DNA from: Hemiscyllium ocellatum
Taxonomy: Eukaryota
Assembly (NCBI RefSeq): GCF_020745735.1
Contig: NC_083435.1
Location: 46,562,498 to 46,626,497, forward strand
DNA: 64,000 nt
Reading direction: 5' to 3'
The notes under the pieces were generated by a model. That model searched no databases. It was not told where the DNA came from and worked only from the letters and a program-made list of their open reading frames with translations. Position numbers and translations under genes: made by a program. This document shows positions 8,631-53,771 of this stretch, one piece after another; position 1 is the first letter of the stretch, and the number at the start of each line of letters is the position of its first letter.

Positions 8631-8700
8631 ATGACTCCACCAGTGATTATACAAATAGAAAATATTTACTATCCCATCCTCGCAATTGTTGGTATTCCTG
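8631..8700 (+). CDS. GPR139/GPR142-like GPCR gene 1, coding exon 1 (MTPPVIIQIENIYYPILAIVGIP; joins 13697-14640, 337 aa total)
   Basis: ATG, 70 nt, G|GTAAG donor; phase-1 splice restores TM1 GIP-AN-LVT; near-identical in three copies. Confidence 0.92.
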
Positions 8701-8899
8701 GTAAGAGCCAGTTACTGTGTGAATTTGTTTAATCTGTTCATATTCATGGAGAATATTTTCCCTGTCTGATACTACCTTGTCTTGGGTTAATGATGCTATT
8801 TTAAAATTCTGATGTGCTTGAACCACAGACTACAATTTATCCAGAATTATTTCCAAAGATTTCCATTTTGTGTAGGTTCTCACAGTATATTAATGTCAG

Positions 8900-11800
8900 C
8901 AGCGGTAGTCAATAGACAGTGAGCCAGAGGGCAGCTCGGAAGGTAAATTTCAACATAAAATGCTTACCTCGTGAATCAGCGAAGCATAGGGTGAATTGGC
9001 CAGACGAGATCAAGGGGACTACTGGGTCGGTGAGGCAATATATTCGGGCAGTGGCTAAACCCAATATACTGCACGTGTATTGTCTTCCCCACGACGTCCT
9101 ACTCTAACCAAAAAAGGAAAACTGTGTGGAGAGTTGTTAGGGTAAGGGTTTTAAAAATTCTCTTTTGGCAATTTCGAGGTGAGGGAATGGGAATGTGGAC
9201 AGGATATGGGATTGCAGGATATGGGAGTTGAGGGATACCACTTGTGTCCCTGTTGACTTCCTTTGCAGTGCAACATACTCCAGCTCTTCACAGACCCCAT
9301 TAAGGAACCAAAGCAGGATCTGGATGAATATCGGATCTCACTGGAGGCTGTGGTGATGATAGACAGTATTTATATGGAGGCAATGACCCCTACATCACAG
9401 AATAATGACAGGAGGAGAGGAAAACAAATTAGGCAGTTCATGCAGGGATACCCCATTCCTCTCAATAATAAGTATAACACTTTGGATTCTGTTGGGTTGG
9501 GGGTGGGGCGGGGGAATCCGCAGTGACTATGCCACTAAGCCTGGCTCCGTAGCGCAGAAAGGAAGTGGCGAGACTCGGCCAATGATCGTGATAGGCGATT
9601 CAATGGTTCCATCATTGTTAGGGCAAGAGTTATAGCTGGGGGCAGGGAAATTATGATGCGGTGAGGCATGACTTAGGATGCATGGCTTGGAAAAGTAAGC
9701 TTCAAGGGAAGGGCACAATCGATATGTGGAGCTTGTTCAAGGAGCAACGATTGAGTGTCCTTGATAAGTATGTATCTGTCAGGCAGGAAGGAAAGGGTCG
9801 TGTGAGGGAGCCGTGGTTTAATAAGGAATTGGAAGGGAAGAGGGCAGCCTATGTAAAGATGAGGCGTGAAGGTTTAATTGGGGCGAGTGATAGTTATAAG
9901 GTAGCCAGGAAGGATCTAAAGAGAGAGCTAAGAGCAGCAAGGACGGCACATGAAAAGTCCTTGGTTGGTAGGATTAGGGAAAATCCAAAGGCTTTCTATA
10001 GCTATGTCAGGAATAAAATAATGACTAGGGTTGGAATAGGTCCAGTCAAAGGTCGTAATGGGAAGTTGTGCGTGGAGGCTGAAGAGATTGGAGAGATACT
10101 GAATGAATACTTTTCATCAGTATTCACTCAGGAACAGGACATTGTTGCCGATGTGAATATTGAATCACAATTAATTAGAATGGATGGCTTTGAGGTATGT
10201 AGGGTAGAGGTGTTGGAAATTCTGGAAAGGGTGAAAATAGACAAGTCCCCTGGGCCTGATGGCATTTATCCTTGGATTCTCTGGGAAGCAAGGGAGGAGA
10301 TTGCAGAGCCAATGGCCTTGATTTTTATGTCCTCATTGTCTACAGGAATAGTGCCAGAAGACTGGAGGATAGCAAATGTGGTTCCCTTGTTCAAGAAGGG
10401 GAGTAGGGAATAACCCTAGTAACTATAGGCCGGTGAGTCTCACTTCTGTTGTGGGCAAAGTCTAAGAGAGAATTGTAAGGGATAGGATTTATGAACATCT
10501 GTATAGGAATAATGTGACCAAGGATGGTCAGCATGGTTTTGTGAAGGGCAGGTCGTGCCTCATAAATCTTATTGAATTCTTTGAGAAGGTGACTAAGGAG
10601 GTGGGCGAGGGTAAAGTGGCACATGTGGTGTATATGGATTTTAGTAAGGCGTTTGATAAGGTTCCCCGTGGTAGGCTACTGCAAAAAAAAACGGAGGTAT
10701 GGCATTGAGGGTGTGTTAGAGGTTTGGATTAGGAATTGGCTGGCTGGAAGAAGACAGAGGGTAGTTGTTGATGGTCAAGGTTCATCTTGGAGTGCATTTG
10801 CTAGCGCTGTTCCACAAGGATCTGTTTTGGGATCATTGCTGTTTGTCATTTTTATAAATGACCTGGAAGAGAGGCTAGAAGGTTGGGTGAGCAAGTTTGC
10901 GGATGATACGAAAGTCAGTTGAGTCATTGACAGTGAGGAAGGATGTGGCAGGTTACAGCGGGATATGGATAAGCTGCAGAGCTGGGCAGAAAGGTGGCAA
11001 ATGGAGTTCAAAGTAGCTAAGTGTGAAATGATTCACTTTGGTAAGAGTAACAAGAAGATGGAGTACTGGGCTAACGGTCAGATACTTGGTAGTGTGGATG
11101 AACAGAGGGATCTTGGTGTCCATGTACACAGATCTCTGAAAGTTGCCACACCGGTAAATAGTTCTGTGAAGAAGGCATATGGCGTACTGGCTTTTATTGT
11201 TAGAGGAAATGAGTTCCGGAGTCCTGAGGTCATGTTGCAGTTGTATAAGACACTGGTGCAGCCGCGTCTGGAGTATTGTGTGCAATTTTGGTCACCATAA
11301 TATAGGAAGGATGTGGAGGCACTGGAACGGATGCAGAAGAGGTTTACCAGGATGTTGCCTGGTATGGTAGGAAGATCGTATGAGGAAAGGCTGAGGCATT
11401 TTGGGCTGTTTTCAGTGGAGAAAATAAGGTTTAGGGGTGACTTGATAGATGATTACGGGTTTAGATAGGGTTGACAATGAGAACCTTTTTCCACGTATGG
11501 AGTCAACTATTATGAGGGGGCATAGCTTTAAATTAAGGGGTGGTAGGTATAGGACAGATATTAGGGGTAGATTCTTTACTCAGCGGGTTGTGAGTTCATG
11601 GAATGCCCTGCCAGTAGCAGTGGTGGACTTTCCCTCTTTATGGCCATTTAAACGGGCATTGGATATGCATATGGAGGTTAGTGGGCTAATGTAGGTTAGG
11701 TGGGCTTGGGTCGGGGCAACATCGAGTGCCAAAGGACCTGTACTGCGCTGTATTTTTCTATGTTCTTTGTTCTATGTTATATCAAAAGATGCGTGATTGT

Positions 11801-52090: not shown

Positions 52091-52827
52091 GTTAGGTAGG
52101 ATTCGGTCGGCGCAACACTGAGGGCCGAAGGGCCTGTACTGCGCTGTATTTTTCTATGTTCTATGTTCTATGTTCTATAATTAATTGGAGGAGGCGGGGT
52201 TAAAATGCTATGAAGCAGCAACTGTGGAGCACAAAGTGAGAGATGGTATCCTCAGAGAAATGTACAAAGAAATGTGAAGACTGTTGAATCCTGTTTGGGT
52301 TTGCAGAACTGAGGCAAGAAAGAGATGGCAGAATGAAGGAATTTTGGATGACAAGGGATGTGGAAAGTCAATCAAGTGGAAGAAGGAAGCCAGCTTGAGG
52401 ATACTAGAAACAGACATGGCTCTCGAATGTTACAATGTAGCCAGGAAAGAACTGAAGAATGCACTTAGAGTATTTGAAGGTGGCATGAAAAGCCCTTGGT
52501 GGGTAAGAAAAAAAACTAATTACGTGTAAGAATCCCTCTCAATAACACACCATCCTAATTTGGATTTGTTTCATCTTCTGGCATAGTCTGCCCATCAAAG
52601 CACATCTGCCTTCTTAAAGACAATTCTAGCTTTCTGCCACAAAAGTGGTGACAGTGATTCGTGAAGAGAGGTCATTATTGTTTTGTCAAGAGTAATCATA
52701 CGTTTTTAACTGAATACTGCTGTTGCCATAGATACCAGCATCTCCTGCATGAATACAACATTTCTGTCAGGATTAGTAATCTATCTGAGGAAGTGCACAT
52801 TGTAATTTTCTTCCATCTTTTCCGCAG

Positions 52828-53771
52828 CTAACTTGGTGACAGTCTTCATTCTCTTACGTGGGCAGTGTGGCCTCTCAAAATGTATCACCCATTACCTGTT
52901 GGCTATGGCAGTTGCTGATTTAATGGTTCTACTATTCGAAGTGATTCTGTATGAAATTAATGATGCTTATTTTTCACATTCATTCCTAAACTATACTCCT
53001 ATTTGTAGTCTTAATCTTGTCCTTTTATTTGTTTCAGTTGATTTATCAGTCTGGTTTACTGTAGCTTTCACCTTTGATCGATTCATTGCAATTTGTCATC
53101 AAACATTAAGAATTAAGTATTGCACTGAGAAATGTTGTACAGTGGTATTATCAGTGATCTGTCTATGTGTCATCTTGCAAAATGTTCCAACTTACTTCAT
53201 TTATGAACCTCGGGAAATAATTGACAACATACCATGGTCATGTTATATGAAAGCAAGCTTCTACAGCTTAACCGTGTTTATAGTGCATTTTTGGCTAGAT
53301 ACCATATTAACCCCATTTTTACCATTTGTTTTGATCCTACTGTTTAATATGTTGACTATCAGACATATTTTAATTGCCAATCGAATAAGACGTGGCCTAC
53401 GAAGTAACAAGTGCTTTGAAAATCATTCTGATCCCGAGGTAAAGGTCAGAAGGAAATCCATTATATTACTGTTAGTGATATCAGGCACTTTCATATTGTT
53501 ATGGATGGTAAATTTTATATATTTTATATCTGTTCATTTCATAAACACACAATTTTTAGAAGCCAATTATGATGACCCTGCCACTATTGCAGAGCAATCT
53601 GGATACATGCTCAGATGTTTGAGTTCTTGTACAAACACATTTATTTATGCAGCTTCCCAGAAACATTTTAGAGATGAACTCGTGCATATTGTTAGATATC
53701 CCTTTGATTTCATCGTTGGCTCAGTCAAATGCTTTAAACTTTCCAGAATTAAAATTGATTTATACAATTAA
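52828..53771 (+). CDS. GPR139/GPR142-like GPCR gene 3, coding exon 2
   Basis: TTTTCCGCAG acceptor; intact 7TM; 12 aa differences from gene 1 overall. Confidence 0.95.

Follow-up and report, generated by a model that had tools for sequence, protein, structure and literature searches.

The 64,000-nucleotide stretch of Hemiscyllium ocellatum DNA analysed here (contig NC_083435.1, positions 46,562,498 to 46,626,497; hereafter the window) carries three genes for G protein-coupled receptors (GPCRs) of class A, g1, g2 and g3, that are arranged head to tail on the forward strand at window positions 8631–14640, 30653–35695 and 45714–53771. Their sequences support well the conclusion that they are functional, selectively maintained tandem paralogues, and they belong to a large receptor family that is related only distantly to GPR139 and GPR142. 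The best overall explanation that we can offer, held at a little under even confidence, is that the three genes are maintained members of a cartilaginous-fish GPCR family that evolves by birth and death, with the binding-pocket mechanism and chemosensory role proposed below.

Three maintained tandem receptor genes

Each of the three genes has two exons (Table 1). An exon 2 open reading frame (ORF), preceded by a polypyrimidine tract and AG, joins in frame to a 70-nt exon 1 located 4–7 kb upstream; the intron between them is in every case a phase-1, GT...AG intron that falls within transmembrane helix 1 (TM1), and all three ORFs are intact, with no internal stops. The spliced products match the Pfam 7tm_1 profile with E values of 1e-19 to 2e-20 (71–74 bits, where the cut-off is 30.5) over profile positions 2–260, a span that includes all seven helices. 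A preliminary description of this DNA, made by a model from the letters alone, had reported three intact two-exon seven-helix genes, and the ORFs, splice sites and profile matches confirm it. Its counts of 15 amino-acid differences between g1 and g2 and 12 between g1 and g3 (11 plus one in the tail) were also reproduced; g2 and g3 differ at 17 positions, and the g2 product is 13 residues shorter than the other two.

By their 7tm_1 matches and the modelled seven-helix fold the g1–g3 products are class A (rhodopsin-like) GPCRs. The modelled protein is the whale shark orthologue (89% identical), for which AlphaFold2, given a 42-sequence family alignment, predicts seven TM helices, a beta-hairpin in extracellular loop 2 (ECL2) and helix 8 (predicted local distance difference test score, pLDDT, 82.7; predicted template modelling score, pTM, 0.81). 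About four residues precede TM1 in this model, in agreement with the tiny N-terminus that had been noted before. Among the class A motifs N1.50 (N25), D2.50 (D54), D107-R108-F, W6.48 (W249), P5.50 and the TM3–ECL2 cysteine pair are kept, and two prolines are replaced, P6.50 of CWxP by Val and P7.50 of NPxxY by Thr (giving N-T-F-I-Y).

The copies appear to have been retained by purifying selection, because the pairwise ratios of nonsynonymous to synonymous substitution rates (dN/dS) among g1–g3 are 0.14–0.24 (dS 0.10–0.12) and the ORFs are intact; comparison of g1–g3 with the whale shark orthologue gives a dN/dS of 0.14 at a dS of 0.36–0.41. Identity between the copies climbs to 95–98% exactly at the borders of exon 2, as against 77–86% in the flanks. 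The whale shark locus (L001), which was fetched by way of its annotated protein, contains, in the 41.5 kb obtained, one orthologue of g1–g3 whose exons are arranged in the same way, and this gene was used as the outgroup. So polarised, nine derived coding sites unite g1 and g3, while the two conflicting groupings have 2 and 1; the intronic insertion of a long interspersed nuclear element (LINE) and a stop-loss extension of 13 residues are further derived traits common to g1 and g3, and g2 and the whale shark gene terminate at the same, ancestral stop position. With the whale shark gene as outgroup these sequences show the order of events to be divergence of g2, insertion of the LINE, and then duplication to give g1 and g3, all of them later than the separation from the whale shark lineage. 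The high coding identity does not call for gene conversion, an explanation that was considered and rejected: nine sites support the g1 + g3 grouping against 2 and 1 for the others, and purifying selection suffices. Sharks have slow substitution rates, and by the dS comparison the duplicates would be about one quarter as old as the whale shark divergence, and hence old. "Tandem-amplifying", the term of the preliminary description, is therefore an overstatement for copies whose flanks are only 77–87% identical, that are already separated by the dS given above and that are under purifying selection.

Two other features of the whale shark locus may be mentioned here. Its RefSeq model, P0001 (448 aa; L001 10001–13684), appears to overrun the true stop, located after ...GVVK near L001:13681. 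Another member of the family, 41–45% identical, is found 14 kb downstream at L001 27948–28856, so the whale shark locus is also a family cluster.

The array is not an assembly duplication or artefact: the units differ by 13–23% in their non-coding DNA, and independent contigs assembled from DNA sequencing runs reproduce the g1 intron and exon without differences.

The ~200-bp block immediately before the ATG is 90–91.5% identical among g1–g3, compared with 77–86% for the other flanks, and is 80–83% identical to the corresponding whale shark DNA, compared with 73–76% elsewhere (the local non-coding background). A TATAAAT within it is invariant in all four sequences (g1, g2, g3 and whale shark), and we infer that the block probably serves as a proximal promoter. 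The TATA-bearing block, the GT and AG splice sites and an AATAAA signal were found in all three genes, as would be expected from the earlier statement that promoter, splice sites and polyadenylation signal are kept in every copy.

Table 1. Positions of the receptor genes, their candidate control elements and the repeated DNA around them (window coordinates; UTR, untranslated region).
Feature	Position	Strand	Remarks
g1 candidate proximal promoter block and 5' UTR	8430–8630	+	TATAAAT at 8559–8565
g1 exon 1	8631–8700	+	70 nt: ATG, 23 codons and 1 nt; N-terminus and first half of TM1; donor G/GTAAGA
g1 intron	8701–13696	+	4996 nt, GT...AG; truncated LINE copy inside at ~9620–11782
g1 exon 2	13697–14640	+	remainder of TM1 to helix 8, tail and stop; spliced product 337 aa; Pfam 7tm_1 E 2e-20
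g1 AATAAA	14670–14675	+	30 nt after stop
g2 candidate promoter block	30452–30652	+	equivalent of g1 block
g2 exon 1	30653–30722	+	2 substitutions relative to g1 exon 1, protein sequence unchanged; GTAAGA donor
g2 exon 2	34791–35695	+	spliced product 324 aa; ancestral stop, as in whale shark orthologue
g2 AATAAA	35763–35768	+	68 nt after stop
Inverted exon 2 fragment	37069–37248	-	residues 255–314 (TM6–TM7); 1.4 kb downstream of g2; tblastn 80% over 60 aa; blastn 93% over 164 nt, minus strand
g3 candidate promoter block	45513–45713	+	equivalent of g1 block
g3 exon 1	45714–45783	+	3 substitutions relative to g1, including I16V; GTAAGA donor
g3 intron	45784–52827	+	7044 nt; longer LINE copy at ~47930–52178
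g3 exon 2	52828–53771	+	spliced product 337 aa
g3 AATAAA	53801–53806	+	30 nt after stop
Fourth-unit start	59249–64000	+	intergenic DNA; self-BLAST 78–87% to 3797–7118, 25170–29560 and 39779–44329
53-bp satellite arrays	1–3100, 21200–23740, 38980–39355, 56680–58800		repeats 70–82% identical
Additional LINE sequence	24326–24892		

A family of cartilaginous fish and its distance from GPR139

The three genes are a small part of a much larger group. A word-seeded protein search gave 1782 clusters (90% identity, E ≤ 1e-5). The best 120 of these are all elasmobranch (Heptranchias contributes 30 and Heterodontus 28) and nearly all carry the automatic name "probable G-protein coupled receptor 139". When representatives at 50% identity were searched exhaustively with HMMER, 110 matched with E ≤ 1e-30 and 205 with E ≤ 1e-10, and all 30 of the representatives that were looked up (at least 36% identity) either come from cartilaginous fishes or lack a recorded name. 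Members are present in sharks, skates, rays and one chimaera, whose Callorhinchus sequence is nested inside the family. In the phylogenetic trees g1–g3 form one clade (Shimodaira–Hasegawa-like approximate likelihood ratio test, SH-aLRT, 97–98) that is sister to the single whale shark gene (100), and there are species-specific bursts in Pristiophorus, Heptranchias, Rhinoraja, Heterodontus and the window species. Such bursts are the signature of birth-and-death evolution, and the earlier proposal of tandem birth and death holds for a family that extends far beyond the window.

The nearest relatives outside the cartilaginous fishes are only ~31% identical. Three salamander proteins at that distance (P0226, P0270 and P0273, from Pleurodeles, Ambystoma and Lissotriton, also auto-named GPR139) form the sister group of the cartilaginous-fish family (SH-aLRT 100); unlike that family they show no sign of expansion, with one sequence per species in the sampled cluster, and their position implies an old gnathostome lineage that was lost in most bony vertebrates. 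A further gene with the same automatic name, here called the conserved GPR139-like gene (P0230 in coelacanth; P0277, P0280 and P0284 in sharks), is apparently single-copy per genome and was found in coelacanth, sharks, sturgeon, teleosts, amphibians and reptiles, with 55–66% identity to the coelacanth protein (P0230, P0277–P0394); no mammal or bird is among the 120 matches listed. With E values of 1e-15 to 1e-18 against human GPR139 it is not GPR139 proper, and some of its gene models are fused with TMEM183A. This gene and the window family belong to the same broad GPR139-related group and are ~31% identical, but its clade (SH-aLRT 99) is separate from the branch that unites the cartilaginous-fish family with the salamanders (SH-aLRT 100), and sharks have both. 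On these trees, which contain no true GPR139 or GPR142 sequences and are unrooted with respect to them, the window family is a clade specific to cartilaginous fish and separate from the conserved single-copy GPR139-like gene. P0258, P0261 and P0230 were tried as true GPR139 outgroups and were rejected when they proved not to be GPR139.

How close, then, are g1–g3 to GPR139 itself? In a phmmer comparison with a single sequence human GPR139 is matched at an E value of 1.3e-7 and 34 bits, a score that barely exceeds that of the vasopressin V2 receptor, and the identity is about 25%; among genuine GPR139 orthologues identity is at least 70% over the range from human to zebrafish (PMC7318219). With the family profile the match is clearer, GPR139 scoring 67.5 bits and the next solved receptor 48. 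The label "GPR139/142-like" given by the preliminary description is thus apt in that GPR139 is the nearest characterised receptor, and misleading in that the shark genes are neither orthologues nor close relatives of it; the comparisons show a distant relationship only. Agonist-contact residues of GPR139 are E3.32, F3.33, H5.43, W6.48, R6.51 and N7.38 (PMC5430874); the family described here keeps two of the six, F3.33 and W6.48, and has Leu at 3.32, Thr at 5.43, Asn at 6.51 and Gly at 7.38, with variation among members at 3.32 and 6.51. Agonism by Trp or Phe should not be assumed.

Other likenesses to GPR139 are a gene of two exons (PMC7318219), which is a likeness in exon number, and the lack of the Pro of NPxxY. 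What sets the present family apart from GPR139 is its TM3–ECL2 cysteine pair, the extreme shortness of its N-terminus, its high copy number and its position in a separate clade; the GPR139/GPR142 group is characteristically single-copy and conserved across vertebrates, whereas there are three copies within 45 kb here, and other cartilaginous fishes have dozens in each species. A Foldseek search with the model found class A receptors at TM-scores (template modelling) of 0.70–0.77, generic peptide-type receptors in the main, with GPR139 ranked 16th at 22% identity, and fold comparison was set aside as uninformative among peptide-type class A receptors.

Binding pocket and possible roles

Variability over 123 family members averages 1.40 bits in the extracellular half and loops and 1.01 bits in the intracellular half (p = 2e-6). 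Within the extracellular half the canonical pocket positions average 1.53 bits and the other positions 1.23 (p = 0.023), a modest enrichment for a list of positions taken from general GPCR literature. The most variable pocket positions are 3.32, 5.39, 6.51 and 7.43, and they are set in a conserved scaffold formed by an aromatic residue at 3.33, W6.48, D3.37, E/D5.42, E7.35 and R/Q7.42. The 21 differences among g1–g3 fall at sites that are variable in the family (p = 0.003). This pattern of fixed and variable pocket positions suggests that the paralogues may recognise one ligand chemotype with paralogue-specific tuning. The ligand would have to bind within the helical bundle, below the ECL2 beta-hairpin, because there is almost no extracellular N-terminus, and the repertoire might be tuned to variants of one chemotype, which would consist of small molecules of cationic or aromatic character or else of short peptides. 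With D2.50 and the DRF motif intact, signalling through heterotrimeric G proteins would be expected.

The single most likely role, which is speculative and which we rate clearly below an even chance, is that of a chemosensory repertoire in the broad sense, whose members, in sparsely distributed sensory cells, would respond to chemical cues that are external or mucosal. TAARs, rodent vomeronasal FPRs and nematode Srw receptors resemble the present family in having tandem arrays, clades specific to single species, and a pocket whose variable positions are set in a conserved scaffold. Sensory-neuron expression has been demonstrated for these three groups, whereas the present family is known here from genes alone. 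It is not directly related in sequence to TAARs or FPRs; its neighbours in the ESM Atlas include Srw-type clusters.

Sharks are famous for their sense of smell. Their OR, TAAR and ORA repertoires are nonetheless very small (PMC11979771), in line with the small OR, TAAR and V1R repertoires that the preliminary description had ascribed to cartilaginous fishes, and in current work the shark nose runs essentially on V2Rs (PMC10116579, PMC11979771). These key papers on shark olfaction treat OR, TAAR, ORA and V2R only, and other GPCR families are not considered in them (PMC10116579, PMC11979771). The expansion is apparently undescribed, as searches of the literature on GPR139 in sharks, skates or elasmobranchs, on shark genomes and on shark olfaction (subscription journals not covered) turned up no description of it. 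A large class A family across sharks, skates, rays and a chimaera has been visible only under a misleading automatic name, "probable GPR139", and it is an obvious candidate for one more repertoire of receptors, whether sensory, immune or mucosal. Should it turn out not to be sensory, its recognition still corrects an annotation error (the genes are not GPR139) and reveals an old vertebrate receptor lineage that was kept only in cartilaginous fishes and salamanders.

Several observations weigh against a chemosensory role, in addition to the modest size of the pocket enrichment and the general list of positions on which it was calculated. Higher extracellular variability is generic for class A GPCRs, and the variability pattern is for that reason consistent with a ligand-sensing repertoire and no proof of one. 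The paralogues are far more alike than typical odorant receptors, with a mean column identity of 67% in the sampled set and a strongly conserved ECL2. The preliminary description had placed the substitutions at the extracellular end of TM2, at ECL2/TM5 and in ECL3; in the family as a whole variability is enriched in the extracellular half and weakly in the pocket (above), but the differences among g1–g3 themselves show no significant extracellular bias (13 of 21, p = 0.16). Nor was a transcript found: searches of sequencing runs with g1 exon 2 and with g3 exon 2 plus 3' UTR gave no RNA run with a match, which does not in itself show the genes to be silent, and the four runs that match g1 best behave as DNA, their contigs spanning the intron and containing no exon 1–exon 2 joint. 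Two further runs, presumed to be RNA of this species, contained no sampled word either, which again does not demonstrate silence. A search of Logan-derived proteins by the exon 1 N-terminus returned genome-annotation models only and no spliced product, and the Logan protein matches of the family search read through the intron and are hence genomic.

The lack of a transcript match in the RNA-run and Logan-protein searches is what would be seen if the copies were non-functional, that is, unexpressed, neutrally decaying duplicates or an assembly artefact, and an inverted exon 2 fragment, 93% identical in nucleotide sequence to g2 and with no counterpart after g1 or g3, shows that the locus sheds pieces. 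We nevertheless strongly disfavour this explanation and think it very improbable, since three ORFs have stayed intact at the dS values separating the copies from one another and from the whale shark gene, with dN/dS of ~0.14–0.24, since only the coding sequence and the block taken as proximal promoter are conserved, and since the non-coding divergence and the exact contig match to g1 (above) contradict an artefact. A more substantial alternative, still an unlikely one in our estimation, is that these are receptors for an endogenous ligand (neuropeptide, metabolite or amino acid), like GPR139/142 or the protostome RFamide/myosuppressin receptors, with the copies providing dosage or tissue sub-functionalisation. 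GPR139 is the nearest solved receptor and, with GPR142, constitutes the deuterostome sister group of the protostome RFamide/Wamide receptors (PMC7617803); the fold and ECL2 hairpin resemble those of the peptide receptors NTSR1, GALR2, TRHR and CCK1R, and strong purifying selection and the high conservation of ECL2 and the acidic pocket residues would suit such a receptor. However, receptors of this kind normally exist in one or a few copies that have orthologues in other species, and the family here has at least 110 clusters at 50% identity and species-specific bursts. Sharks, moreover, already retain the separate, conserved single-copy GPR139-like gene, and the polar residues with which GPR139 binds Trp or Phe (R6.51, N7.38, E3.32 and H5.43) are not conserved.

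An immune-cell receptor repertoire, chemoattractant-like or danger-sensing and expanded together with antigen-receptor and major histocompatibility complex (MHC) genes, seems less probable again. It would draw on a Leucoraja erinacea model, P0408, in which a 7tm_1 domain of the family type is joined to an MHC class I domain (PF00129), and on the presence of chemokine receptors among the weaker matches of the family profile. The window itself contains no V-segment-like or MHC sequence; a motif scan for T cell receptor (TCR) or immunoglobulin V segments (YYC framework plus recombination signal sequence) found none in it. Chemoreceptor genes in mammals are linked to TCR and MHC loci without having an immune function, which we also count against the immune explanation. 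The P0408 fusion suggests, as a separate matter, that a family member adjoins an MHC-I-like gene in a skate. The most far-reaching form of the chemosensory proposal is that the family may be a fifth, cartilaginous-fish-specific olfactory or chemosensory GPCR family, an orphan GPR139-related lineage recruited and expanded to more than 100 genes that would detect small molecules in animals with near-absent OR, TAAR and ORA genes, and whose physical linkage with TCR V and MHC class I genes, of which the skate model may be a hint, would be conserved in the genome; stated in full this is doubtful, and we give it about the same weight as the endogenous-ligand explanation.

Repeat units, satellite and LINE

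Self-alignment of the window gives a spacing of 15.1–22.0 kb between units, a wider range than the 17–21 kb first estimated, and each unit includes a block of 53-bp satellite; between units the introns and intergenic DNA are 77–87% identical. A fourth unit had been said to start within the window, and homologous intergenic DNA is indeed present at its right end (Table 1), but that DNA contains no receptor exon, and exon 1 of such a unit would be expected ~1.3 kb past the window end. Satellite arrays are present in every intergenic spacer and were duplicated along with the unit; the g2–g3 spacer retains a short remnant only.

The LINE in the g3 intron is a non-LTR (long terminal repeat) retrotransposon with an ORF1-like ORF at 48273–48794 and a 772-aa reverse-transcriptase ORF at 49772–52090 (RVT_1, E 1e-34). 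The truncated g1 copy occupies the same intron position and is 88% identical to 49995–52178; the g2 intron has no copy, and LINE sequence is found additionally in the g1–g2 spacer (Table 1). Contig depth in the DNA sequencing runs is orders of magnitude higher over the LINE than over its flanks, and the element must therefore be very abundant.

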